This document shows, in pieces, positions 1-17,900 of a stretch of DNA of 64,000 bases (positions are counted from its first letter, which is position 1; every line of letters starts with the position of its first letter). Both the position numbers and the translations under genes were made by a program. The notes beneath the pieces were generated by a model that made no database searches, had not been told where the DNA came from, and saw nothing but the letters and a program-made list of their open reading frames with translations. Origin of the DNA: Pavona decussata. Taxonomy: Eukaryota. The DNA lies in assembly GCA_977016875.1 (NCBI GenBank), contig CDRNST010000218.1, forward strand, positions 1,674,001 to 1,738,000, written 5' to 3'.

Positions 1-344
1 AATGCCTTTCGTTAATTGCAAACCTCGCTACGTGTAACAAAGTAAAACCAAAAAAAAAAAAAAAACATTCCCTACGTACTGTCTTTAAACTTTCCGTGTT
101 CACTGGTGCGCCCAAACCGAACTTTACTTTAGCGTCTCACTAAAATTATTAAGGGCACCAAACGACAAGCTAATCATTACTTATCATTATCTAGTCTAAC
201 AATATAGGCTTTCCCCGATTACTTTACTTTAAATTACTTTACTTGTTCATCCAAGTATTCGATGGTTGGTGAATGTCTGTACACGATAGCTAGCAATTAA
301 ATTCATCCCAATTCCTAGAGAACGAAAACTATATTTAAACTGAC

Positions 345-467
345 CACATGTTGAAGGCATATGAGAACCATCTTGACAAACTGGTAACTTGTCTTGGTGA
401 CATGTTGACGACCACGGAATACATGTACCGTCTGCGCACTGAAACAAGTTACTGGAACACGAGGTTC
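345..467 (-). CDS. Exon 19: divergent LDLa repeat
   Basis: SCSSNLFQCADGTCIPWSSTCHQDKLPVCQDGSHMPSTC. Confidence 0.88.
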
Positions 468-3400
468 CTGCAATTTTAAAGTTTGGAAAATTATGCATAA
501 TATTGTGGCATGGCAACAAACAACATATCAAACTATTTGTGCTGTAAACACGGACTACACGTGTTAGCACAAGGAATACTACTCTTCTGAATAAAGTGTT
601 TGTATAAATTCATGTGCTTGGGGAAATAAAGAAAAACGATTTATTAGTTAGATAAGATGGAAGTTCAATGAGGCTGTTTGGAAGGAAAGTATAAATGTGT
701 TATGACATCCCTAGTAATGAAAGTTGAATTGTATTTTAAGCTTAAAAGTAAAGCCCATTCTATACAAAAAATAGTTATATCTCTTTCTGTATTGCACCCC
801 ACTTCCAAGAAAATTCCTATTTTTTCCCTTCAGCGTAATTTCTGCAGGATAAGGTGCTACTTTGACAAAAAAATCAGCTAATCATTTCCCTTTATGAAAA
901 TCTAACCTGTGCAGTTGTTCAGTTATTAATGAATTCGCAAACATTGAAGCCTGCTATTTTCTTATAAAGCTGCCCGCTCACTGACGACATTTAAGTACTT
1001 CGGCCCAAGTTTCATGTCAATTTTGAAAGATAACAGCGAATCACAATGCAAGTATACTCATGACGGAAAAAAACTGAATAAACGTAATAAACTTACCACA
1101 AAACCGTTCATCTTTAGAATCTGAACAGTCATTTATTCCATCGCATAAGTTACCTGATGGAATACAACCACCTGAAGAACATGGGAACTCAACGGTTAAA
1201 CAAGTGCAACCCTCTTCATCGGACCCATCCAGACAGTTGACGTCACTATCACAGCGGTGTGTAGCGCTAATGCATTCGCCATTAACACACTGAAATTCAG
1301 TGGGACTACAAGCAAAATCTGAAAATAATAATCATGAAACGACTTAAATCAACAGAACATTTATATGGTGAGCCAAGGCAAGTGCATGGTATGTTACGGT
1401 ATGGTATGGTACGTCGTGGTATGGTATAGTATGGCATGGAATGGTATGGTATGATATGGCATGGTATGGCATTGTATGGTATGTATGCTATGACAAGGCA
1501 TTGGATTGTATGGTACGGTATGGTATGGCATGGCATGGCATTGTATGGAATTGTATGGTACGGCATGGTATGGTATTACATGGTATGGTATGGTATGTGT
1601 TGCATGGCATTAGATGGTATGGTATGGTATGGTATGGTATGGTATGGTATGGTATGGTATGGTATGGTATAGTATGGCATGACATAACATGGTGTAGTAT
1701 TGCATGGTATGGAATGGTATGGCATGGCATGGCATTAGATGGTGTAGTATGGTATGGATGGTATGGTATGGTATGGTATGGTATAGTATGGCATGGTACG
1801 GTATTGTGCAGTACTCTTTGTAGGAGCAATAAAGGGTTAAAGATGCAGCAGAACTCCGTTATATGAATGGATGGCTATCTCGAATCCCCAACATTTAGCT
1901 TGTGTAACAAAACCTTCATAAAGTGAGTTCTTCGTGATTTACCTGGTGATGCATGGGAAGGCGCCAGCGTACATGTCTCCGTTGTTATCGTAATATTATC
2001 CAATAGTATGGTTGGGGTGCCGTTCACTGCACCTAGGCCTTCAAATATGATCTACAGTATGACAGGACAATGGAATGATAAGTTGTTAAAAAATATGTAT
2101 AATATGATGAAGCAGAATAACATATCGATAAAATAGAACTGTAAGATAAACTAATAGAATAACATCAGTGTTTCAACGATACAAAAAGATAACACAACAG
2201 AATGATACCAGTTGTTAATACGATGGCACAATAGGCTAGTGATATTTAAATAACATTGGATCTACAACATGATAGATTGGAATATGATGTTAATACTAGC
2301 AACAATATGACTGAGCTCAGGTAAAGTCATATTTAGAACTTGGAGAACAATCTGTCCTAGGTGTAACACAGCGAGGTCTCTCCTATGCCCGCCAACGTGC
2401 TGCTTCTAGCAATTTGGTCTCCCGCCTTGTCTCCTCTCAAGTTTTATGCTTACATATTAGTAGTTTTAGTTATTTAGCATTTTTTTCATATAAATAATTA
2501 ACGAGGGATCCGCTGAAATTGGCTACGCTGTAGTGGTCTCCCTGCCTAATTATTATATCTTTGGAATTTTTTTGTTTCTATTGTTTGTTTCCATTCTGTT
2601 TGTATTTTAGTAAGGCGAAGCTAAATAAATAAATAAATAAATAAATAAATATTTGACGTTAGCACACTCAAGGAGACCGCTCGCGGTCTAAATCAAGAAA
2701 CATCGTGATTAAAAAAAATCGTTATTTATACGCTGTACAATGTGTTTTACTTTCACTTCCCATGGTGATTATAAGGTAAACTAAATGAAAAATATGAAGG
2801 AGATTTACTTGATTTTTCTCGTGTGGCTTCCAAGTAACTTTGGCCTTGTTCCATTTGTTCCCTTGAAACCCTCGTAACTTCCAAATTAAAACCTCTTTTT
2901 CACCTGTCTTAGTGTACACCTTTAGCGAAGAAAGGAACTTGGAAGGAAGTTGGAACTTGAAGCGTAGGCATAACCCAACATCTTTATAAAATGGTTTCCA
3001 TGGTAAAAAAGGACTTTCTAGCCGGCTATTAAGGGGTTCGTTGACCATACCAAGATCACCTGAAATTTGAGGTGAGTAAAAAAATAGAGAAATATTAATA
3101 TAAATAATTGAGAAAAAATAAAATAAATACGCTTCAATAAAAATAGAAATAATTTTTTAGACTTACCTGAAATTTTCCATCCTTTGACTTCCCAGTCTTC
3201 ATAATCCTTTGAAAAGGTAACCTGTGTTACTGAAGCCACTAAAAACATAATTTCAAAAACTTTAGTCACTAATGCTAAGTGAAGAAACTACGACTCCCGT
3301 AGCTTTCATACAGTGAGTGTCCATTTTAGGTAGAATGAGGAGGCACGGAATATTGTCACGCTCCTTAAGATTCAACCCCCTGATGAGGAGACCTCATAAC

Positions 3401-4937
3401 TCTTCTTCAAGCAACATCGTTGAAATGCTGTATCTTTTTTAGACATGTGTTACCTTTAATATTGACATCAACAACTTTTCTTCTTCCTTTCTTTGCTGTC
3501 ACGTCATTTGTGAATGAGTAATGTATCTATTGAGTGAATGTTGAAAAGAGGTTGTGTCACTGGCTTGTACAAAAATCAACTGCATTGATCGAACTGAGAA
3601 ACAATTTACATAACAGTACATATAAAATTTTTGTAACCAAAATTGAACAATTCAAAATGGCTGTAATGCTACTTTAATACCTCCATAGAACTGTCTCCTG
3701 GCTGAGTTATCACTTCAATGTCTACTTGGAATATGTTCTCAGAACATGTTAACTTGACAGATGGATTTACAAGGTATGATTTGCCAAAGGCGTGGAACTC
3801 CAGTGCAACGGGGCAGTCAGGACAGTAGATACCCTCACAACAGTACTTATATGATGCTGAAAACAAACAACAACTGTGATCTGGTTAATGCAAAGTTTAC
3901 ATAATGACAAAAGTGATAAAGAGTTTGAAAACTGTTAAACAGATAATGAGTTACTTGCCAGTGATACGAATAACTGAGCCAAGATCGACCTGTTGGATAA
4001 TGCTGTCATTTGGACGCAGAAGAGTAAAAGACAAACTTCTTATTCCTATTGAGGAAACGTACCAAGACTGAAATCAGTTATGAAAAATGTGGGTCTTTCA
4101 CATCTTTTTCCTTTCAGCTACATTCATCAAAATATATTTAGTAAAACGTCAGTCGCATTTTTCTAAGCTAACCTCTCTTGGGATCAGGAAAGGTGGTCGA
4201 TAACGCCAGTATTGTACAAAACTAACGATTGAACACGCCCATTCTTTTCAAGAGATATTGGAGAACCTAAAGTATCCCTCTTCTCACAGAGTATGTGAAC
4301 TCTAAAATCAAAATGGCAGCTGATAGTCCACAATCAACTACAGTCATAGATCGCATCACTGCCATCATCACTCTTGCTGATCTCAGCTTACAGTGGTATG
4401 AATTTCGGACGCCTTTCGCATAAGGTGTTAGCTTTCAACCCATAGATAGCGTATATCATTATAGAGAACCACAAGAGCTGCAAAACATCGTCTTGGAACA
4501 TGTATGGAGGTCATGTGTTTTAATGTTATAACAAACAGCCCCACTACAAACCTTGTATGCACAAAATATTTGATATTCTGGCTTCAAAGGAGAATGGAGA
4601 TCAGGAAACAAAACACAGACAAACCGTATATAACCTACCAGGAGGAATTGCAAACAAATGGCTCCCTTGGATCGGTTCTTGTTGAATTTCCTTTGGTCTG
4701 CTCATCCCAACAGACAAACATTTAAACCGCAGTTCGTCTTTCATGTACACGGTTAGTACATACAGCTTACATTTACTTAGAGATAAACTTGACTTGGACA
4801 GCTTCTTTAAGCACCTGTTAAAAAAAATCGAAATTAAACGTCAGTTCCACCAGTGGCCGATTTTATACTAGAGGACGCGTTATCCGTCTGGGCAAACTTG
4901 GGGAAACATTCGTTGTTCGTCTGGTTATTCGTCCGAC

Positions 4938-4974
<37 letters not shown>

Positions 4975-7900
4975 CGAACTGTCTTCCGCTGTTCGTCGTT
5001 CAAGACGTACAATGGATTACAGTTCGTCCAGACGCATAATTTGTCTTCTGCCCGTCTTTATACTAGAGACGCATCGCTAACTGTCAAGGACGCCTAATTC
5101 TTGCCAAGAGTTGACGACTCATTTGATGTATTGAGTGGCTCAAAACGGCGTTTTGCACTTGATATCTTTCCCTCTGTCACTGGCAAGAAGTGATTGATAC
5201 AACCACAGGTAAAACTGCACTTTTCACCTCACTGAGTAGGCTTCAGGAGTGGAATGTTATGTCATCTGGGCTTTGTAATGCGCCGAGTGCGTTTAAAAGA
5301 CTGATGTAGCTTATGCTTTTGAAAATTGGCCTGGTTCATCTTGATAATATTATTTTCACGGGAGGAATATTTGAAGGACTGTTACAGCGGCATAAGGGAA
5401 GCATTTAAGCGTTTATGCAGCAGTGTAGGATTGAGACGTTAGCCGACGTTAGCGAGTTTCCTTCGTTCTGTCATGTTGTCACAGAGGAAGGCTTTTTCTG
5501 AAAAAATACACAAATTTAAACATGGCCCTTTCCAGAAAATGTCACATAGATCAAATGTCCTCTTGGCCTTGCCTCTAATTATCGATGGTTTCTTGACAAC
5601 AACTCGGCCACTGTATAAATCAACAGAGACAGCGATAGAGTTTCTTTGGACGCCATCATGCCAGCTGGCTTTTGACAGATTTTTAAAACAACATTGCATT
5701 ATCTACCAGCAAGAAAATTATTTATACGAAGAGATCACACTTTAAGTACGGAAATTATGATCATCCGTGTTAGTGTAGTGCTGAGAAGGACTGTTTGTGG
5801 TGACTTTGACTGACGTCTCCACAACCTGAGCGGAAGTCATCTTCAGAGCTTTCACTTTCTTGTGGTCGATCCCTAAGGTCAGGATTCCACTAGAGAAACT
5901 GACACTTGCATTGAATTTCTCCTTACGTTTGATTTTAAAATCGAGTATCGACCAGGTTAATGACACCAGAGGGCACTCTTCGATCCCCATTGAAAATGGT
6001 CCAACTGTTGGAATGCTGACAATGTGCCCCGGCCTATCATATTGATCTTCATTCTGAGATACTTGGCAACAATGTTTGCAAGGTGCACCCTTAGGACTGT
6101 TTGCATCAGTGTGCGACCGTTGTGCCACAAGTTTGAACCAAGATATAGGAAGGGGACCCTGATCTTTAGGTCATAATTGGATGGAAGACGTTCAGCGATG
6201 AAAAAAACCATCATGAGAGAATGTCTCACCTTAAAGTTCTGAAATAAAGTCACCAGATTGTAACGGGAACAGATGTTCTTCAGAGAGGACGTTCTTTGTC
6301 GTCGGTTGGAAGTGACACGAGAGACCAAATCATGCGTCAAGACGTTCTCTTCCCAGCCGTGTCCGATAGATTGCCTTCGCCGCAGGTCATCGTGGTGTAC
6401 AGAGGACTCTGAGTGTTCTTATGTCCCATTGGCCGAAGCTTTTTTCATCATTGCAGAGATGAGGTTGCAGGTTGCAATGTGTGACGTGTACCTCGTGAGC
6501 CTCTGAAGTGGTATGTGGTGGGACCATGGACCAATTGCTGTCGATATTTATTCGACCCCTACCAGAAACTCCACGAAGGAAGACGTTCGCGCTGGAAGGT
6601 AGTAATTGCTTCTCTAAATGAAGTGAATGCTGGCCGATTCCAAACTAAAAGTCATAACGTTGCCGAGAAGCTGATCAGTGAATTAACTGTTGTTTCAGTG
6701 TACCCCGTCAAACTTCAAAGTGACCAAGGAAGCAATTTGAATCAAGCGTATTGTGGAGGTCTGCAACTATTGGGCATTGCAAAGACTCCCATTACACCAC
6801 CGAATCACCATGTTGAACGTTTCAATAAAAGCCGCACGGAAATTTTGAATTGAAAGATCAGGGAAGTCCAAACAGAGTGGGACTTGCAGCATCCAACTTG
6901 CGTGATGGCATGAAGTTCGGTCCATGAGTCAACGAGACTATCCCTAATCAAGTGATGCTGGTCCGAGAAGTGAGCGATGCCTTACGTGCCATGACCGACA
7001 CACCTCCAAGACAGACTTTGCTAAATTAAAGCTCTTCAAAAGAAATTTACCAGTGCGCATGATTTGGCAAGAAAATACATGAGCATGGCAGCCTTACGCC
7101 AGAAATGCAATTTTATAAACACCTCCTGGAAGAAAACTTGTTATTCGTGATTGCGTTTGGTCACACAATATTCGGAGAAGAAAAGGAAGAAATGCTAAAC
7201 TTGAATGCCCTTAGTAGATCCTGTGTCTGTTTGTACCAGCTGTCTTGTCATATGTAGTTTACCGCATCCAGACGAGTACGAAGGCCAAGCCAAAGGTCAT
7301 TTGCTCAGATAGATTAAAGCCTCAATTGGGTCCCCGGTGGACAGCTGGATTCCAAAAAAGTGGCTATCAAGTTTTGGTTGAAGATGTAGAAACTGTTTCG
7401 GTTGTCGAGAGTGGAGGGTTTGCGCCGTCAAAAAGGAGTCATTGTGGGAGGGGAAGAGGAAGATGACACCCGACGACCTCGGACGGTTGATACAACTGAG
7501 GTTGACAACAATGACCTGCCTGGTATTAACTCCTATTATGAAAGACCAGAGATCTGAGGAAGTTGATGATCAATCAGCATTATCGCCTGTCCACACTACA
7601 CCTGAGGCATATTCTCGGAATCATGTAGACCTTCAAGGAAACAAAGGTCCCCTCGCCCTCGCGGTTTTGGGTGGATGGTTAGTTATGGCTGCAATGAGCT
7701 TAACATAACATTTTCAAGGAAACTAGGGAAGAATTAAGAACTTTTGTTGACAATTGGTGGGGGGTTACGGGTTATGAACGATTTTTGTTGTTAGAGTCAT
7801 TTGTGTAAAATCCAAGTACAAAAGCACTAGGGACAGTGCTTATGAAGGGGGGTGTGGTACGGCGATGAGGAATGTGCGCACGTTGAAAACATAGTCTGTT

Positions 7901-10900
7901 TTCCTTGTTGCTAAGCCCAGTTAATAACTAAATGGCTATTTCCTCGAGTCGAGCACAGTGACCTATCTTTTTCATCTCGTTATTTTAAGTCAGCTATTAT
8001 CCTCTTTACGTTTAAACATTTTTAGAAAAAAAATTGACGACAGAAAAAAAGTTATTACCAGGAATACGAGCTTGCCCACCACCCTTAGGCCCGAGAACTC
8101 ACACACAAGAAACGTGTTGGCTGGATACTGCTTCATATTGTGCTTCTCTGCCAAGAAATGCACCTTAAATTGCCAATTATATTTTATACATCCTATGCAT
8201 AACGTTTTTATAAGTTCTGCTTTATCTATGTAACTTATGTTACCACCAGACATGACAATAACTGACCTATCTTATCATATTCATTTCTCGAAGTAATACT
8301 AGAAGTGAACAATCACAGACAGTTTGAGAAAATTTTCACAACAATTTTTATTTCACGGGAATCACCTTAACAAGTTTAACCGTGACACTTCGTAATTAGC
8401 CATTTCTTTTTTAACCTACGTTATTGGACAATTGGGCCGTAAACTAAAAATAGCTAACAATGTTAAAGGAAAAAGGGTTGTTTGTCAAGTCTTTCCTTTT
8501 GTTACATTTTCAAAGCCCCTCGTAAACTGTCGTTGTATTTCCCTTACTCCTTAATCGGCCGAAAATCCTCTGGAACGTATAGAAAACATGTAAAAAAAAT
8601 TTCCGATTCATCTTAAAAGTTGCTTCATGCAACTGGACCAAACTTCCTACCCAACTCGGCAGCCTTGGTGAAGGCAAATCCAGTTCGATCGGTCTGTTCA
8701 GTCGGTCAAAAAATTATGCATGTCTTATGAAACTAGTAAAGGACGTATGAACTAATGCGACAGTAAATAACATGCAAATCTAAGAGGCCTAAAAAGTAAA
8801 GAGTAACACTGAACTCTTGGAATTTACTCACCCGTCTGACTCACTATTGGCGGCCCAACGTTGTAACTGAACGAGCATAATTTCTTTTTCTGAATAAGAA
8901 GCAGGACCGTCCTCAAATGAAAGCTCTCTTTCTGGGAATTCTGTAAACCACAATTCACATTCATCTCCACAAGAAAGAGAAAACTCGTAGCTCGCACTCA
9001 TCGGTACCTAGAATGTTCAATAACTTTATCACTTTCGAGCTGAACGTGTGCGTAAAGCGACACTTTACAGAATGTAGGCATTATACGAGTTGTTTGCGCG
9101 AGTATCAGTCATTGCCGGTCCTAACAACATTCACTTAGACGATCGCATTTGACTTACGGACCACGTTTGATACTGAATTACATTTTTCGGAGGCGATTTA
9201 ACAAAGCAACTTATATAAAACCTCGCTACTTTAAATAGCTCACAGTGATATGAAGTTTCTATAACGTTTAGAGAGTTCAGGAATACTTTGATGTTACAAA
9301 TGACATTGCAAGAGTCCAAAAATACACCACAGTTATGGGTCTACGTCCTATGTACACAGGTACCCCTTTAGGAGAAAAAATGGAGGAAAATTGAAATCGT
9401 TCTATTATTGCTTAGAGATAAGGTTATTCTACCTGTAAATAGGAAGTCATTCTTTCGCCATAGTTGTCGCTGACCTCAAATGTCGTAGACATGTTGAACG
9501 TGGTTGTATAACCATCAGGTGGCTGATCAAAGATTGGATTTTCGCGAAGAGTTGTAAATCCCTCAGTATTCACATACCTATACCATAATTCCCGGCGAGC
9601 TCCTTGGGCCTCAACGACAGAATCTGTACAGGTGAGAGAGGTTTATTTGTTTTTAAAAATGACCGGACGACAGTTTGAAAAGACCCTTTCGATAATAAAC
9701 TGGTCTTGATAGCGAATGCAAGGATGTTTACTTTTTGATGAGAATTCCCCTCCAAATATTGTAAGAATTACTTTTACAAACTTGTTTTTCAATGGAAAAA
9801 AATCGGGCACGCAAATAATATTAAGTTTTAAACTGTACATTTTGTCAAATGAAATGCTCATAACATGTAGTTTATGGAAAAATAATTGAATAATATCGGA
9901 CATAATTAAGAAATCATCTCTCTAATATGTCGATACACAGGCGAGTTTTGGGATGAAAGAGATCAAATTGTAAACATCGTATTATGAGTTAATATCAACC
10001 ATTGTTACTCTACACCAAGACAAATAACAGTGCACAATGTCTAATCATGGTACTCACGCACCGAAAGAAGCTACAGCGACGCTACCGGCAGGGGGAAAGG
10101 AGTGGCTGACGAATTCCACTATTACGTAGCTGCCGGTTCTTGGAGGCGTGCATTGGAACAATAACTTGGAGGGGCTGTTAGAAATGCTCATATCGCTACA
10201 CTCGGAGTAAGGGCTGTTATCATCAGTCACGAATAATGTTGATGATTCAGCGTGTTCGTCACAGCAGTTAACAAACAGATCCACTGTAACTGTGAATACG
10301 AAAGTCTGCTTGGCTAGGGTTATTATCCATCTCGGATTACGTATCTACAGAGAAAAAAATTCGATGAGAATAACATCCAGTTTTCAAATATTGTAATAGA
10401 ATGCACATAAAGGAAAAATTAATCTTACGATATCTCGAAAAAATGATGTATACGGTAGGATATCCGATAAAGAAAATGTTTCTTGTCCCTCAATCTGGCC
10501 TTGGGTCCAGCTTTTATCCTTAATCATATTCACTGTAGATATGAAACGCAAACAAAATTAGCCTCAGTTTGTTACCTTCGTCTAAAAAGTAACTTTATGG
10601 AAAGGGAGACCAAACAAATTGATTGTTTAGTTACATATTCAAAAACCGTTTCCAGAGAGAGAAATGATCTGGTCTCAAGTACCTTGGAAGCTTTCACATA
10701 TAAAACCATTCATATTTGTGCAATCAGCGTTCAACAGCTTTGTCTCATGTCTGCTGAGTGCCCCACATGAACTCTTGACATCCATAAGCGGGTAGCCATT
10801 TTTCCATTGTTTATGATCAACAATGTTTCCGTCATTCCAAAGCCAGGTATCAAGTCCATTCTTAAATCTCGTTCGATGGAATCCCACAAAAAAGTCCGTT

Positions 10901-13900
10901 TCGGAGTTAGTGATGCTCATAAGCAGCCTAATCAAGTCATCGCTGGATAAAACAGCATTCTTTAGTATTGCCAGGTCCCCTCCTTGCTGCCTACAGGATG
11001 CACGGGCGCCGTCCCAGGTTCTTCGCGTATCCACGAAGAAACGAAGGCAAGATTGGCCAACAGGTATCCAGCCAGGGTAACAGCTTCTATTACTCTCTGC
11101 AACAAATATTACATACATATACTACTGATTCGAAAACAAAAACATTGATTCAAAACAATAATAAATCAAGACTCGGATTAACAAAGCTCTCTCAAGTGAA
11201 GACAATTCTAAGAATGGATTTTGGATAATAGGCTTTTTATCTAAGCAATACATATGAAATAGATCATCCTGCGATAGCTTGCAAAGACCATGATAAGTAA
11301 ATCAATACATGTTATCATTCTTTTTTAAGAAGACACCGCCGGTAGGCAATGAGATATCTATTGCAGCACAGTAGTAACACCTGATGGCTGGGAGAAACGC
11401 TATGGTAATGGTGTTTGCATTTCACTCTAATTATGAAGCACAAAGCCCTCTCAGCAGAAGTTTGAAGATAAAGATGACGAGTGTTTGCACAGGCAGCGTT
11501 ATTGAGCTCTCCCAAACGTTTTCGAGTGTTGCCGTAATTCATGGAAACTACTTTACAAAAATTGGACGTTTATCGAGCTCCAAACTTACCTGGAAGAAGA
11601 GTAACGGGAAATGTTGCTGTTCCAACTATTGAGCAACAGTCCACTGACGTGTTAGAAATGCTTATCCTACTGGAGTTAGAACTTAAAGCAAATTCAAAGA
11701 TTTCATCAGTAGCTTCGTTTCTTTTAGCAATGAAAAAGTCCTGGGGAAAGCGCTGAGAGTCGTTAAGGTAGAGAACTGTTGATATGATGGGTCTTCTGTT
11801 GTTGAATGCAGGATAAATGAACATCATGGTGTCGTTCTCACTGCGCCAGCTCTGATGAGCTGTAAACTGAAATTTGTGCCGCCATTGATCGTGGGCTGGT
11901 ATGGAGTGAACTCGATAAATCTCACTGTTTTTTTCCCTCCTTGAAGCGACATGGAACACTTGAGGGTCTGCGATAAACGCAAATACAATGCAAGAGATGT
12001 TTAGCATTAACACAAGAGGAAAAGTAAATCGGTAATTTTAAGACAAAAAATAATACTTTCTCAGTTAAGGTACAAACCACGTTTGCAAGATCCTTTTATG
12101 AAGCTAACTTCATCCAAAGCAGCATCGCCAAAGTATGAACTCCCTCTTATTCCGTCTATGATAATCTAACAAACAAGCAATATATTGCTGAAGGTGAGTT
12201 ATGTCGGTCAGTGTGTCCTTATACAGGGCCCCTCAGGATAACAGCCCCGTAGCTGATTGGGCCACCCTGTCTTAAATAAAGTTCACTTANNNNNNNNNNN
12301 NNNNNNNNNNNNNNNNNNNNNNNNNNNNNNNNNNNNNNNNNNNNNNNNNNNNNNNNNNNNNNNNNNNNNNNNNNNNNNNNNNNNNNNNNNNNNNNNNNNN
12401 NNNNNNNNNNNNNNNNNNNNNNNNNCTTGCTTACTTACTTATACACAATTGATTTTGTGATCATACGTTTTAGTGCCTCTTAGTTCACCTATTGTCTTTT
12501 TTTACCCCTTTTTACCTTTTTATCCCCTCTTATCACCATTTTTAATTTCGTAAGGGTGGGGTGGGGGAGCGGCGGTGGAGGCGCTGTCATTCGACTCAGT
12601 TTTTTTCTCCTATCTTTTTAAATCAGTTCCTACCCCTCAACACGTAGCCAGTGGTTTCAAAATCAAGATATTAACTAAATTTTTAGAAAAAAAAGTGATA
12701 AAAGAGACTACGTTATACTAACGAAATGGCGTTGGAAATTACACCAGCATAACAGTGCTGGAGGAGCTTACTGATAGTTTTTCAGGCTGATTTTGCAGAA
12801 AGGAAAAGTATTTCTTGCAGAACTTATTGGTCAGTCCTCTAATCTGGCATTACGACACACTAGAAGGTGACCAGCGAAACATAGTTTGTAGTGATGAGAT
12901 GATAAGTCCCGAGAAGCCATCCTGAAAAGTGACGGAATAAAAAGACATGTCTGTCTGTAAAAGTCACGACACTGCTTTATGTTCCACATAGCGATATCAT
13001 ATAAGGGGTTGTCAAACAATATCTTGATACAAACCTGATACTCAGATTTCCCTTCAGTTATCTCAATCTGTGCTTTAATCCAGCGGTCTCCCCAATGACC
13101 AGACTTAACCCATACGATCTTTTCCGAGCCATTCATGGTTTTCATGCTGATCACAACACAACTCATAGTACTACCGTAGAAATTATAATGGAATGTCATG
13201 CACTTGGTACCATTCAAAGGAGGGCTCCATAATCTTGCTTTGTCTAGTGAACGGCCAGAAGACGATTCTATGTAAATGTAATATCCATTACCTATAAAGA
13301 CAAAAAAATAAAACATTCATTGAAGACTTCTAATCTTTCAGCTGCTCGAATCCAGTCACAATAGCATAATATCTTAACTAATACTAGTCAGCTTGTTTTT
13401 GTTTGCTAGAAATCACGCTTTGACTATCAATGGCTGTTCTGTATTCTGCAGAAAATAGTAAAGTAAAGCGCGCGCGTTTCAGAAATTAATGGAAGGGTTT
13501 TAAAATGAATAAATCCCTTCCTGACTTGCTGGTATGTTGGATGAGAATGATAATGCCCTTGGCTAAAAACTAAAAAAATTGTCTCAAAATTTCGCAGTTG
13601 CCCTCGAAACTTCGCTTCTAGACCAAATCTTCATTTTGTTGGACAATCATTCAGCTTTGGGCATTATCCATCGATATACCAGCCGCCTGATTATTTAATA
13701 AATATTTTCGTTTGCACTCCACCAGCGAAGCAGCACCATAGTTTCTTTAGAAACTGCTCCCCTTATGAATTACCCGACATGCAACTTCCATGGACATCAA
13801 AATATCGTTTGCACGTGAACTGCACGTCTCTGACACTTCTTGTCATTCAGCAACTTGTTAATGTGCGGCTGCCTTATGGAGGTTTTTGCCTTACCTCACT

Positions 13901-14921
13901 TAGAGACATAATCATGGAAAAAGAAGAATGGTTTAACCTGACACGTCTCGAGACGGGCCTGTGAACCTTGTGGGAGACTCCCCTCGATATCTTTCCCAGT
14001 CCGTCTCGTCCGTTTGCTTCTCGTTTGTCCATCCACACAAATCTTTATCAAAGGAACAGTTTCCTGCAATAGAGTAAATATAATACGCTAATTGAAACAT
14101 TTTGACACTATTTTATCTCCTACCACAGTTATCGATTGAATACAAATAAAACTTCGTAGCCTTTACGATATTCTTATGTTAAAAATCTTTTCAATCAGTT
14201 TTCAATCTTGTGAGGTTTCTGTTCGAAATTTATCCGTTACACCAAGTATATTCGATAGACTGACTTTCGCCGACTTAATCTAAATTATTCTGCATGCAAA
14301 CTATAGGCCATTTCCGAGTTACTTTGAACCTCATTATGAAAGCGAGGCCATGTGCAAAGTTTTTATTATAAAAATTGGTTTTCATTCATATGCAAACAAA
14401 ACTCATTTTCATATGAAAAGTTTTGCACTTAGCCTCGCTTCCATAATGAGGTTAAAGCAACTCGGAAATGGCCTATTTAATTTATTTAAAATTGACGAAA
14501 GAAGCCTTTTTTTCATACGTGAATAACTTTTATTCCACTCTTTCATTGTCTTAGTCAATGATAATTTGCTGGATCTTAATTTATGGTCTTACTCCCCGGA
14601 CTTACAAATTCATCTAAAAATGAGGGATGAACCTCATCAAACTTTCGGTACATTTTCCAGCTGTATAAAGTTTGAAAATTGAAAAAGTTGACCTTTGAGA
14701 TGTCGCCCAATTTAAAATTCACTGCGCTGGTTGAAACTCCAAATTAAAGTTTATACTTGGAGTGTCGCTGCTTTTGGTGGAGGAGTAGTAAGCTCATTCG
14801 CGTGCTTAAGATTCCTTCATGCAGACTGGTTGAACAGCTTACCTTGATTTGCATCCGCTGCCAATGCTACATTTAGCCACGAACACCAGAATATCAAAAT
14901 AGCGAATTCGATGAACTTCAT
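345..14921 (-). CDS. Multi-exon secreted/cell-surface mosaic protein (SP-MAM-X-CTL-F-type lectin-like-PA14-Cys-rich-MAM-LDLa x3...), 3' end outside window
   Basis: 19 exons with AG acceptors and GT (one GC) donors join in a single open frame, 3385 nt in total; recognisable domain motifs in most exons. Confidence 0.9.
1097..1318 (-). CDS. Exon 18: two LDL-receptor class A repeats
   Basis: [35 protein letters not shown] and [35 protein letters not shown]. Confidence 0.93.
1385..1805 (+). repeat. (TGGTA)n degenerate pentanucleotide microsatellite, intronic
   Basis: Direct tandem atggt/atggc units. Confidence 0.95.
1943..2051 (-). CDS. Exon 17: MAM domain 2 end
   Basis: IIFEGLGAVNGTPTILLDNITITTETCTLAPSHASP. 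Confidence 0.88.
2809..3059 (-). CDS. Exon 16: MAM domain 2 core
   Basis: SRLESPF...GLCLRFKFQL...LIWKLRGFQGNKWNKAKV. Confidence 0.9.
3167..3238 (-). CDS. Exon 15: MAM domain 2 start (divergent)
   Basis: VASVTQVTFSKDYEDWEVKGWKIS; phase 1-1. Confidence 0.8.
3454..3526 (-). CDS. Exon 14
   Basis: IHYSFTNDVTAKKGRRKVVDVNIK; phase 0-1. Confidence 0.75.
3681..3856 (-). CDS. Exon 13: Cys-rich unassigned domain
   Basis: SYKYCCEGIYCPDCPVALEF...LTCSENIFQVDIEV. Confidence 0.8.
3959..4045 (-). CDS. Exon 12 (followed by GC-AG intron)
   Basis: GIRSLSFTLLRPNDSIIQQVDLGSVIRIT; only the G|gcaagt donor keeps the frame. Confidence 0.72.
4639..4814 (-). CDS. Exon 11: PA14 domain C-part
   Basis: LSLSKCKLYVLTVYMKDELRFKCLSVGMSRP...EPIQGSHLF; phase 2-1. 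Confidence 0.85.
4853..5078. mobile_element. Palindromic MITE-like element
   Basis: gtataaagacgggc...tctggacgaactgt is inverted as acagttcgtccaga...gcccgtctttatac. Confidence 0.6.
5080..7870 (+). mobile_element. Decayed Gypsy/Ty3 LTR retrotransposon pol in intron 10
   Basis: Frameshifted RT (LPRVDDSFDVLSG; VMSSGLCNAPSAF; HLDNI), WTPSCQLAF, integrase (SDQGSN; VERFN), polypurine tract gaagggggg followed by TG near 7845-7856. Confidence 0.8.
5740..5855 (-). mobile_element. Short PLE-derived repeat with degenerate minimal hammerhead motif
   Basis: Minus strand: CTGAAGA T GAC...GTG GAGAC GTC agtca; core GAAAC is mutated. Confidence 0.6.
8832..9007 (-). CDS. Exon 10: PA14 domain middle
   Basis: VPMSASYEFSLSCGDECELWF; phase 0-2. 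Confidence 0.87.
9433..9623 (-). CDS. Exon 9: PA14 domain N-part
   Basis: GARRELWY...DQPPD...DNYGERMTSYLQ. Confidence 0.85.
10062..10344 (-). CDS. Exon 8: F-type lectin/galactose-binding-like domain
   Basis: NPRWIITL...VNCCDEH...FQCTPPRTGSYVIV, resembling NPWWRVDL...DCC...C.PP..GRYV; donor gtgcgt. Confidence 0.8.
10429..10532 (-). CDS. Exon 7: start of F-type lectin/galactose-binding-like domain
   Basis: VNMIKDKSWTQGQIEGQETFSLSDILPYTSFFRDI; needed to bridge phase 1 to phase 0. Confidence 0.75.
10683..11096 (-). CDS. Exon 6: C-type lectin domain
   Basis: CYPGWIPVGQSCLRFF...TWDGARASCRQQGGDLA...FFVGFH...WLWNDG...GFICE. Confidence 0.93.
11590..11967 (-). CDS. Exon 5: unassigned ~126 aa domain (possibly divergent cadherin/Ig-like)
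   Basis: 378-nt open exon, cgcag acceptor and gtaag donor, phase 1-1; domain identity uncertain. Confidence 0.75.
12078..12165 (-). CDS. Exon 4: MAM domain 1 C-end
   Basis: IIIDGIRGSSYFGDAALDEVSFIKGSC; phase 0-1. Confidence 0.9.
12290..12425. other. Assembly gap (136 N), probably within a (CTTA)n tract of a LINE tail
   Basis: Ns flanked by aataaagttcactta and cttgcttacttactta. Confidence 0.9.
13035..13291 (-). CDS. Exon 3: MAM domain 1 core
   Basis: GNGYYIYIESS...ARLWSP...CMTFHYNFYG...GHWGDRWIKAQI. Confidence 0.92.
13938..14063 (-). CDS. Exon 2: MAM domain 1, N-part
   Basis: NCSFDKDLCGWTNEKQTDETDWERYRGESPTRFTGPSRDVS; phase 1-1. Confidence 0.9.
14303..14476. mobile_element. Palindromic MITE
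   Basis: TIR ataggccatttccgagtt / aactcggaaatggcctat plus internal inverted arms. Confidence 0.85.
14843..14921 (-). CDS. Coding exon 1: signal peptide
   Basis: MKFIEFAILIFWCSWLNVALAADANQ then G|gtaag; an acceptor (ttgcag) 15 nt upstream of the ATG implies a non-coding exon further upstream. Confidence 0.85.
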
Positions 14922-17900
14922 TTCTTTCTTCTGGCCCTGCAAGTAAAATCACGTGCAAATAACTACATTGTAATGTAAGGGCAGTCCGTACCCTTAATAA
15001 CTCAGTGCTGACACAAAGTATTATTTGAATTTCAACAAAAATTGATCTCTCCTAATAAGCAGCGAATCCGCGCACAGCGGAACTTGCCTGATTTTTTAGC
15101 CACAAACTTTAATTGAATTTGCTAAGCTTCAAACAAGCCTTCGACATCTTCGTTGTCGTGATTTTTTTGTGGATTGCTTCAACAAATTTCAGCGCCAGTT
15201 TTGCAAGAACTGAGCATAACTTTAAATGAATCTTTTAAACATTATCTGCTATTTTTCTTTCTTCGGTCTTTTTTAATATATCAATTACCTTAATCCAATG
15301 TCTTTTATTTTGGTACTGGTTTAATTTCGTTATTTTGACTCACAATTAAAGCACACGAAAATTAAACATCAGGAAATTTATCTGTAGAGAGTAATTGTGA
15401 AGGAGGCTGGTCGCTTAAACGCCATGATGCAAAGTGTGTGGTAGCAATCTATCTCCGGCACACTTAGCCCATGACGATTTTGCCCCTCTACATATGTTTT
15501 TAGAGATAAAACTATATATTCTTTGGTACTGGCGTTTTTTGCTTTATCAGTTTTTCTAAATAATGGATCAACTATAGCATGAATTTTAGCTGATACGTTT
15601 GCACGATATTTTGTGAATCCTTATACACGCAAATTAAACAAGTGTTATTGTACTTGGTAATACTTGACAATACACTTGCTTTAGGTGTTGTTGGAACAAC
15701 TCTACTTTCACACAGTTAAACCAGACCGAACGCACTGTGTTAGGCTTGTATCCACTAACATATGTATTTGTGAAGTATTAAATGCATCGAAAAAGAATTA
15801 ACATGCCGTGAACGGCTAAATGTAATTTATAATTTGCAATTTGCAACATCTTGTAATCCAAACATTACTCGTACTTTTTTTCTTCTTTTCAATTCATGAG
15901 GAAAGGAGTGCATGGTTTGTTCTTCAATTTCCTTACAGTTAACTTTAAAACTAGAATTCATCAATTTATTTTTTGATGATGAGAGACTAGGCAATAACTG
16001 CTCATGAATCAGGAGTTTATTTCTTTAAATTTGTAAGCTGCACAACTGTGGAGTCAGTAAACTGAATAAAATAACACAATTAAAAATGTTTTACCAGCGT
16101 GTCAATCATTTACGGGGAAGAAGTTTACCCTTTTTTATTTTTGCTTCCTGTACCTATTCTTCCTTTTTCAAATGCTTTTTATAATGGAAAGAATTTAGTT
16201 TTAAATCGCAAATAAAGAAGACAAAATAACAGGCAAATAGCGAAAGTGCAGCCAGCGCCAGCTTTTATCACTGATAGACACCACAGCTTGGTAAAACATT
16301 CATGTGTTCAAAAAGATAAAGCCAAAATAAATAAAATAAAACAGCCTCTAACACAGGCTCTTTTTAAAAGAATAGATAACAACAAAGTGACATATACCCA
16401 CAAACTTGCAAGGAGAGTCGGTGAACGTAATGGAGCTGAAACTTTTGAAAGCTTCAGAAACGCGAAACGATGGCGAGCCAAATCGTCGTTATTGTAGTTA
16501 CATGGTCATGACCACAAACACAGATTGTTGCAAAGCAAATAGTGCTATGCTTGAATGTAAATAAAGAAATTAAACTCAATGTACCATCTGCCTATACAGT
16601 CAAAAGTATCTCACAAGATCACTACAAAGCCGCAAACCTGGGTAAGATGCAATCAACATCACATCCTTTTTGTGTAAACAAAAGGTTGTTTTAATTTGAG
16701 TAACGAACATGTATCAGATGTATACGGAGAAGATATCTTGTGAAGAAGTTACGATAAGAGCACAACAACCAAATTAGCTCACGGCTTTAAATAAAAAATA
16801 CAGGCAGGCAACTGATGCTTCAAAATTTACCGTACGCTCTCATTCCAATTCTAATTGCCAAAATATGTAACGACAGGATTGTGTGGTGGAAAGGGGTTCC
16901 TGAAAGAATAGAGCACGTCACTACTCGAATTACGTTTATCAAAAAAAGAGGAAAATAGCATAATAACGCTTTCCAAAAGTGTAAAAAGAGAAAAAAAAAA
17001 AAAATCATACCTATAGTAGGACTTCTTTCCATGAAGAGTCCTCTGTTTCAAAACAACTCGATGAAAAAACCGAAAAACAGGGATGTTCTTGTTTTTCAGT
17101 TGACAAAAAGAACACACTCTAAAGGGAAAACAAATCTGTAACTACCTGCAGTAATTTCCATGACATCAAAGCTTAAATTTGAAGCCTATCTTGAGTAATT
17201 AAACCCGTAACATTTTCACCAAGATAGTACGAACTCCTCGTGTAGTGTTCGTGAAAAAGGATCAAGGATCTTGAGCGGTTATTACCAATGAAATTAATGT
17301 CTTATGTTTGCTGTCACTGGGTCAATAAAGCGGTATCATGAATTATTCTTCGTCTTCCTAAACCCATGTTCAGTTCAGTCCTACGAAGCCTTTGCACGGC
17401 GGGTTAATCGTGATCCACATAATGTTTAAACTGAATTATCAAATGTAAGCAGAGCGAGGTAAAATATCAAAATATTGTTGGAGAGATTTGAGAATATCCA
17501 TCTTCTACATGACCAGAGAGATTTGAAATGTCATGGGATCTTGATTGATTGATCCTGGTTTGATGGTTTCATAGGCGTTTTGACAGATACGTACTATTTT
17601 ACCGTCAGTTTTGCTAATTGAAGTTTTTACTGTTATGCAAATATCAGAGGGAGCCTTTAACTGAGCGGCCTTCTGACTGAGGAAGTCTCTTTCGGCGTTT
17701 TTCAAACCTAAATTTCTTGCAATGAACTGATCTTCAAAGAACACTCCTTGCTGAAGCAATGTGATCATATTTCAAGCCCTGTAAATTGAGCGTGCCTGAC
17801 AACTGAACAAATATTTATATTATATAGACTCTGGGGGCTTGTTCGATGAAAAAAATATATTTATCCCTTTTTACGTTTTTATTTTATCGCTTAACAGTAG

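Follow-up and report, generated by a model that had tools for sequence, protein, structure and literature searches.

The interval 345-14921 of the 64,000-nucleotide stretch of Pavona decussata DNA studied here (the window, C218:1674001-1738000) reads as the N-terminal ~1,070 residues, about the first third, of one very large receptor gene on the minus strand. This gene would encode a protein of at least 2,892 residues in 47 exons, of the type C kind (RXFP/GRL101) of G-protein-coupled receptor with leucine-rich repeats (LGR), and we consider it likely that all of these exons serve a single receptor. The length of the gene is about 48 kb to the stop codon of the exon that encodes the seven-transmembrane domain (7TM), and about 54 kb if the kinase-like exons that follow belong to it. 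From the N-terminus, the predicted protein would carry a signal peptide, a MAM domain, a domain here called X, a C-type lectin-like domain (CTLD), an F-type-lectin-like domain, a PA14-like domain, a Cys-rich piece, a second MAM domain, three LDLa modules and a short linker. The middle part would continue with two MAM domains, two F5/8C domains, a WSC-like domain, a short unnamed exon, a pentraxin domain, a MAM domain and a CUB domain. The C-terminal part would consist of an LRRNT cap, about nine leucine-rich repeats (LRRs), a hinge and a rhodopsin-class 7TM, probably followed inside the cell by a kinase-like domain of catalytically dead appearance.

In the window, 17 exons run from position 14921 to position 345, all flanked by AG and GT, with matching phases and no stop codon inside an exon or in a split codon (Table 1). 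A further 50 kb on the downstream side of the gene was also read; family scans were run exon by exon, and the joints were checked by phase and by split codon. The first-pass annotation of the window had proposed 19 exons spliced into one frame. The single frame holds, given the splice sites, the phases and the absence of stops, but 17 exons were recovered and the other two were not found. The domain order that it gave, from the signal peptide to the three LDLa modules, was recovered in substance, with PA14 suggested only through Acropora homologues and not by a direct Pfam match. Its end of the gene at 345 does not stand, given that the third LDLa exon leaves in phase 1 without a stop and that RNA contigs splice onward from it.

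Between its ATG and the stop codon in the 7TM exon, the curated chain comprises 47 phase-consistent exons, 8,679 nt and 2,892 codons, and is free of stops. This chain is the output of a dynamic-programming chainer, corrected by hand with homology and phases. The chainer reproduced those RNA-confirmed junctions that it included, missed the RNA-supported LDLa3 exon, and chose a wrong acceptor for MAM4a (letters mark the successive exons of a domain). Three of its exons, at window 12921, at window 8889 and at L003 5756-4336, were spurious and were replaced using homology and phases.

The continuation beyond the window was observed in RNA. Contigs of four RNA runs were aligned to C218:1669001-1675000, and two of these runs (X1 and X2, from the same organism and different studies) give minus-strand GT..AG joints in the order LDLa3, a 78-nt exon, MAM3a, MAM3b, MAM3c, MAM4a and MAM4b. 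In one contig, another 144 bases precede LDLa3 on its 5' side; they are not from the adjacent intron, which fits splicing from the exon of LDLa 1 and 2, located outside the aligned stretch. RNA joins the exons from LDLa3 to MAM4b; for the junctions upstream of them, E1 to E16, the evidence consists of splice signals, phases and homology. A gene end after MAM3c, where a TAA codon is found together with AATAAA, was considered and rejected, given that the RNA joints place this TAA within the intron, as part of a GTAAAT donor. On the same strand, still further downstream, Pfam detects two F5/8C domains, a WSC-like domain (weak), a pentraxin domain spread over three exons (weak), MAM5 and a CUB domain (E 4.6e-30).

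The LRRNT, LRR and 7TM exons are found 25-33 kb past the start of the window, on the same strand. Directly before the hinge and 7TM stands an LRRNT exon followed by eight exons of 72 nt each, all phase 2, that show the LRR pattern. The nine split codons of the LRRs all specify L, I or M, in keeping with the requirements of the repeat. The LRRNT and one LRR match a paralog, and the LRRNT also matches the Acropora muricata model P0061. The hinge and the 7TM share one exon of 1,072 nt, which matches Pfam 7tm_1 with E 4.5e-30. Among solved structures, its closest relative is RXFP1 (E 1e-61), followed by TSHR (5e-39), LHCGR (4e-37) and then FSHR. The 7TM retains DRL at the DRY position, CWMP and NPLLY. 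By its sequence, the predicted protein thus has the tested features of a type C LGR, namely a 7TM, an LRR ectodomain with a cap, and LDLa modules, of which the ectodomain has three, not adjoining the LRRs. That these belong to one polypeptide is shown in part, with RNA joining LDLa3 to MAM4b and the remainder resting on the phase chain, the paralogs and the Acropora models. Reading the adjacent downstream sequence has in this way given substance to the earlier guess of a giant LGR-like G-protein-coupled receptor (GPCR).

The Acropora models of this family run past the 7TM into a domain that weakly matches protein-kinase profiles. In the present locus, open reading frames (ORFs) located 1.5-4.7 kb after the 7TM exon match these Acropora tails, and a paralog on contig C4 has equivalent tail exons. 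One of these ORFs, at L005 3197-2943, matches Pkinase with E 3.4e-7 over positions 71-134 of the profile. A phase-consistent path leads to the tail from a GTAAGA donor at L005:6576, located 30 nt before the stop of the 7TM exon, and the kinase-like tail is probably attached to the 7TM of the present gene as modeled. If attached, it is probably a pseudokinase, judging from its motifs: HND...S is found in place of the HRD loop, and GHFG, in the next exon, in place of DFG. A 2025 survey of fusions between 7TM and kinase domains reported them only from oomycetes, amoebozoans, choanoflagellates and sponges, with none reported in cnidarians (PMC12716839).

The phases of the introns bear on how this gene was built. 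Phase 1 is found in 19 of the 20 introns between domains and phase 0 or 2 in the introns within domains, the boundaries having been assigned on the phase table. This bias is the classical signature of exon shuffling, and agrees with the phase-1 shuffling proposed from the window.

The gene has close relatives in the same genome. Seven further copies of X are present, and the nine closest paralogs of the 7TM are 59-61% identical to it. For six of the seven other X copies, a 7TM with 59-61% identity is found 44-79 kb downstream on the same strand, the distance in the present gene being 44 kb. Five of these X-to-7TM units stand in tandem on contig C4 (~1.65-2.10 Mb), on the same strand and with a spacing of 44-77 kb, and one more is found on contig C239 (~1.65-1.73 Mb); the X copy at C4:1298993 has no 7TM partner among the listed matches. 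One of the C4 units is colinear with the present gene from MAM1 to the 7TM, with 29-62% identity; it lacks MAM2, both F5/8C domains and the WSC-like domain, and retains the pentraxin domain. From these sequence comparisons, the gene is a member of a small, uncharacterized tandem family.

Relatives are also found in Acropora. In A. millepora, XP_044177330.1 (P0046, annotated as 'uncharacterized') contains a signal peptide, MAM, X, two CTLDs, F5/8C_2, PA14, the Cys-rich piece, two LDLa and a MAM domain. In A. digitifera, LOC107348826 (P0137) holds PA14c, the Cys-rich piece, LDLa, two MAM domains, CUB, LRRs, 7tm_1 and the kinase-like tail in one model. The first 419 residues of P0137 are 89% identical to the end of P0046, up to the stop of the latter, from where P0137 continues, and P0061 of A. 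muricata likewise splices on where P0046 ends. Public annotation hence already holds pieces of such genes, sometimes cut in two, and none of them is characterized. This agrees with the first-pass annotation, which did not recognize the domain order from any characterized protein: the relatives that the architecture search retrieved, those of Acropora included, are predicted models named 'uncharacterized' or 'GRL101-like'.

Several observations weigh against a single receptor. Of about 46 junctions, only 7 have RNA evidence, whose depth is low (2-4x), the junctions E1-E16 and E23-E47 are models, and the RNA label of the supporting contigs is a guess, though the contigs are spliced. The LRRs of the present gene are undetected by Pfam, single exons of 23 residues being too short for scoring, and none of exons 9, 10 and 11 by itself gives a Pfam match to PA14. 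An in-frame stop is found in the 7TM exon itself, 30 nt past the proposed donor, so that the tail may be optional or absent. In the introns that follow MAM4, a scan for hydrophobic ATG-led first exons returned, at domain boundaries, a single weak candidate, which has a phase-1 donor and lies shortly before the LRRNT. Finally, the A. millepora RefSeq annotation splits the equivalent locus into the secreted P0046, which ends 11 residues after the MAM3-equivalent exon, and a 'GRL101-like isoform X2' (P0149).

This split, the candidate first exon and the low RNA depth over the joints are what would be expected if the locus held two genes, one for a secreted multi-domain protein reaching from the signal peptide to about MAM3 or CUB, and a separate one for an ordinary GRL101-like LGR with its own promoter, with the contigs representing occasional read-through (conjoined) transcripts. 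This arrangement is unlikely, although it survives better than the other alternatives. The junction of MAM3c with MAM4a is spliced in both of the RNA runs that cover it, and the intron just past the donor is covered in neither. The 2,892 codons are free of stops, and the same scan, which recovered exon 1 as a control, returned no hydrophobic ATG-led first exon in the intron before MAM4. Moreover, P0137 and P0061 bridge both halves, and colinearity is kept despite divergence to 30-60% identity. As for the ORF upstream of the LRRNT, it could be an alternative first exon of a short LRR-7TM isoform, or arise by chance in an AT-rich intron.

The donor of MAM3c (GTAAATAAA) contains the stop and AATAAA, and P0046 ends at the exact homologous position where the A. 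digitifera and A. muricata models splice on. Both observations would suit one locus with two products, in which intron retention or polyadenylation just after MAM3c gives a soluble 'decoy' in addition to the full receptor. We hold this to be slightly less probable than two genes, given that early stops are usual in introns, so that the stop alone is weak evidence, and that the contigs of the two RNA runs examined leave the retained intron uncovered. A decaying, domain-shuffled relic, transcribed but not made into a receptor, is very improbable: the loss of lectin-type sugar-binding motifs and the presence in the introns of a tRNA gene, a microsatellite and the remnant of a retroelement would speak for it, but none of the 47 exons has lost its open frame or its splice sites, the insertions are confined to introns, and both the 7TM motifs and the CTLD exon (59-93% conserved in relatives) are kept. 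One large receptor hence remains the reading that we prefer.

The modules with lectin folds deserve caution as to their names. The CTLD exon belongs to its fold by its Lectin_C match (Table 1), and its nearest solved relatives are CTLDs of the mannose-receptor family. In the alignment to these, the motifs of Ca2+ site 2 are absent: YPL replaces the EPN (or QPD) triad, and LLN replaces WND. Among the aligned relatives YP is invariant, and L follows it with a single exception. A word search with this exon returned matches that are all unspliced genomic ORFs and hence give no evidence on junctions. The F-type-lectin-like domain has as its best solved match the eel F-type lectin 1K12, and this match is weak (E 0.089). 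Of the fucose-binding triad of the eel agglutinin, His52, Arg79 and Arg86, the alignment to 1K12 places F at Arg79 and H at Arg86, while His52 falls in the preceding exon, outside the alignment. Since the canonical binding residues are absent from both the CTLD and the F-type-like domain, 'lectin' names a fold here and not a demonstrated function. The description 'multi-lectin', given to this protein from the window, is thus one of folds: two of the three lectin-type domains appear without the canonical sugar-binding residues, a sugar is not implied as the ligand, and these domains caution against reading 'lectin' as sugar binder. The glycan or microbe sensing that the first-pass annotation proposed gains no support from either site.

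The PA14-like region was traced with an Acropora family profile built locally from seven family members. Exons 9, 10 and 11 are colinear with the PA14 region of the Acropora homologues, which themselves score 21-29.5 bits on Pfam PA14 against a cut-off of 24. This profile located exon 11 beyond a 4-kb intron and fixed the PA14 phases as 0>2 and 2>1. The Cys-rich exon 12 that follows matches no Pfam family and is conserved with Acropora. The MAM domains are recognized across their split exons, with profile matches for MAM1, MAM2, MAM3, MAM4 and MAM5.

Domain X gave no Pfam family match in the exon scan. Among 1.84 billion representative proteins, 17 relatives were found, all of them short ORF-level fragments, and unannotated except for members of the Acropora cluster. 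Their alignment shows a conserved single-exon domain in which certain Y, P, D, F and C residues never vary, and in two relatives the open frame passes directly from the C-terminus of a MAM domain into X. The AlphaFold2 (AF2) model made with 18 sequences is all-beta with nine strands and of no more than moderate confidence (pLDDT 68, pTM 0.44), and comparison with solved folds gave no match (best E 2.8 with Foldseek on PDB, best Z 3.1 with VIA-align wide). X is a real, lineage-restricted domain without an assigned fold, and the model is too weak for a claim of a new fold.

Table 1. Exons and other features of the locus. Positions are those of the window unless another stretch of the contig is named.
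Feature	Position	Strand	Evidence
Exon 1: signal peptide with the ATG, phase 1 at its end	14843..14921	-	Sequence, hydrophobic-start scan (sole candidate there), phases
Exon 2: MAM1, N-terminal part, phase 1 to 1	13938..14063	-	Pfam MAM E 8e-6, profile 1-38
Exon 3: MAM1, middle, phase 1 to 0	13035..13291	-	Pfam MAM E 2.5e-16, profile 41-147
Assembly gap, 136 N, within intron 3, left unfilled	12290..12425	.	Flanking phases, MAM profile
Exon 4: MAM1, C-terminal part, phase 0 to 1	12078..12165	-	Pfam MAM 131-158, E 0.09; Acropora profile E 8e-4
Exon 5: domain X	11590..11967	-	Relatives, alignment, AF2 model, other genome copies
Exon 6: C-type lectin-like domain without EPN/WND	10683..11096	-	Pfam Lectin_C E 1.2e-12
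Exon 7: F-type-lectin-like/galactose-binding-like, first part, phase 1 to 0	10429..10532	-	Splice sites and phases; no direct family match
Exon 8: F-type-lectin-like, main part, phase 0 to 1	10062..10344	-	Pfam F5_F8_type_C_2 E 2e-4
Exon 9: PA14-like part a, phase 1 to 0	9433..9623	-	Acropora profile 462-529, E 0.046; paralog match
Exon 10: PA14-like part b, phase 0 to 2, GTGAGT donor	8832..9007	-	Acropora profile 530-551, E 1.8
Exon 11: PA14-like part c, phase 2 to 1	4639..4814	-	Acropora profile 586-638, E 0.003; paralog E 3e-7
Exon 12: Cys-rich piece after PA14, phase 1 to 0	3681..3856	-	Acropora profile E 3e-5; paralog E 5e-9
Exon 13: MAM2, short first part free of Cys, phase 0 to 1	3167..3221	-	Splice sites and phases only
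Exon 14: MAM2, middle, phase 1 to 0	2809..3059	-	Pfam MAM E 2.8e-7
Exon 15: MAM2, C-terminal part, phase 0 to 1	1943..2051	-	Splice sites and phases
Exon 16: LDLa 1 and 2, phase 1 to 1	1097..1318	-	Two segments matching Pfam Ldl_recept_a, E 1.2e-21
Exon 17: LDLa 3, phase 1 to 1, no stop, spliced beyond the window	345..467	-	Pfam E 8e-5; RNA contigs
78-nt exon with three Cys, between LDLa3 and MAM3	L002 (C218:1664001-1674000) 9433-9356	-	RNA; no family detected
Short ATG-led hydrophobic ORF with weak phase-1 donor GTGTCT, just upstream of LRRNT	L004 (C218:1644001-1654000) 8922-8877	-	
Kinase-like exons after the 7TM	L005 (C218:1634001-1644000) 5069-4848, 3197-2943, 2142-1906	-	Acropora tail matches
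ATGGT 5-nt microsatellite, ~84 copies, 74% matches, most of intron 15	1386..1804	.	
Decayed retroelement pol remnants in the 4-kb intron 10, antisense to the gene	4850..7700 (approximate ends)	+	Plus-strand ORFs
tRNA-Thr (AGT) gene, antisense, in the 2.3-kb MAM3c-MAM4a intron	L002 (C218:1664001-1674000) 6421-6494	+	

The assembly gap falls within intron 3 (window 13034-12166), where the exon before ends in phase 0 and the exon after starts in phase 0. The MAM profile is continuous across it (~41-130, then 131-158), and in the C4 paralog the pair of MAM1 exons that flank this intron is ~490 bp apart, with no query exon matched between them. Given these phases, the continuous profile and the spacing in the paralog, the gap most likely hides no exon.

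The microsatellite of intron 15 yields long spurious open frames on both strands. The remnants in intron 10 show, by eye, motifs like those of reverse transcriptase and integrase with frame breaks, and Pfam detects only a faint RVT_1. RNA contigs reach very high depth over the tRNA-Thr (AGT) gene, and an Rfam scan of window 1-16000 returned no match.

In RXFP1 and in the glycoprotein-hormone receptors, a rhodopsin-class 7TM, coupled for the most part to Gs, is under the control of the LRR ectodomain and the hinge. A protein with the same core may work in a similar manner. The array of modules, ~2,000 residues long, would be the part that captures the ligand, for which a surface, the matrix, a microbe or a symbiont are candidates. 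The signal would then be relayed through the LRRs and the hinge to the 7TM, which would couple to a G protein, Gs by analogy with these receptors, and the kinase-like tail may serve as a scaffold. The ~20 modules shuffled into the ectodomain are of kinds that serve adhesion and pattern recognition elsewhere.

A wider and tentative proposal, which we advance as possible with less confidence than the single receptor itself, is that of a coral tandem family, with at least seven loci here and also present in Acropora, of ~3,000-residue receptors that combine a mosaic of lectin-fold and adhesion modules, X among them, with an LRR-7TM core of the relaxin-receptor type and an intracellular pseudokinase, and that sense surfaces, microbes or symbionts via G proteins. 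If true, this would be a fusion of a GPCR with a kinase fold in a eumetazoan. If the single protein is true, the locus would show how exon shuffling can make a candidate sensor of surfaces or microbes out of a GPCR of the hormone type, fusions between GPCRs and kinase folds would extend to cnidarians, and public annotations would be dividing such genes, as seems to be the case for the A. millepora models. In coral genomes, no gene family is more amplified than that of the rhodopsin-class GPCRs, and it has no known function (PMC10236652). Type C2 (GRL101-like) LGRs are orphans, and this locus offers a concrete and testable architecture for one such clade.

The comparison with known systems places the core of the protein close to RXFP1 and RXFP2, the type C1 LGRs, which have in common with the present gene LDLa, an LRR ectodomain, a hinge and a rhodopsin-class 7TM. 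The ~9-10 LRRs of the present gene, one per 72-nt phase-2 exon, can also be likened to those of RXFP1 and RXFP2. In RXFP1, however, one LDLa stands directly before the LRRs and there is no other module, whereas in the present gene three LDLa modules are located ~1,200 residues upstream of the LRRs, within a mosaic of ~20 modules, and a kinase-like tail probably follows. Roch and Sherwood (2014, PMC4079206) report that the LGRs of cnidarians and placozoans group near type C1, with multiple LDLa in those of cnidarians. GRL101 of Lymnaea and the GRL101-type (type C2) LGRs of cnidarians, which are orphans, have several LDLa like the present gene; receptors of the GRL101 type are described as arrays of LDLa with LRRs, and this description does not include MAM, X, CTLD, F-type-like, PA14, F5/8C, WSC, pentraxin or CUB domains, nor a kinase-like tail.

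The commonest named matches to the MAM parts are MALRD1-like proteins ('MAM and LDL-receptor class A domain-containing'). These join MAM and LDLa by phase-1 introns, as is the case here, but lack X, the lectin folds, the LRRs and the 7TM, so that the similarity is one of single modules. The reported fusions of GPCRs with kinases (PMC12716839) place a C-terminal kinase fold after the 7TM, as modeled here, but their 7TMs are not those of LGRs. A literature search found no paper that describes the present architecture. The closest relatives are the Acropora models, which are computer-predicted and unnamed, and which share the module order of the present gene with 25-48% identity over the matching modules. 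They contain two CTLDs and lack MAM2, both F5/8C domains, the WSC-like domain and the pentraxin domain, being in this closer to the C4 paralog than to the present gene. As predicted from its sequence, the architecture of this gene differs from RXFP1/2 and from the described GRL101-type receptors by the mosaic of its ectodomain and by its tail.

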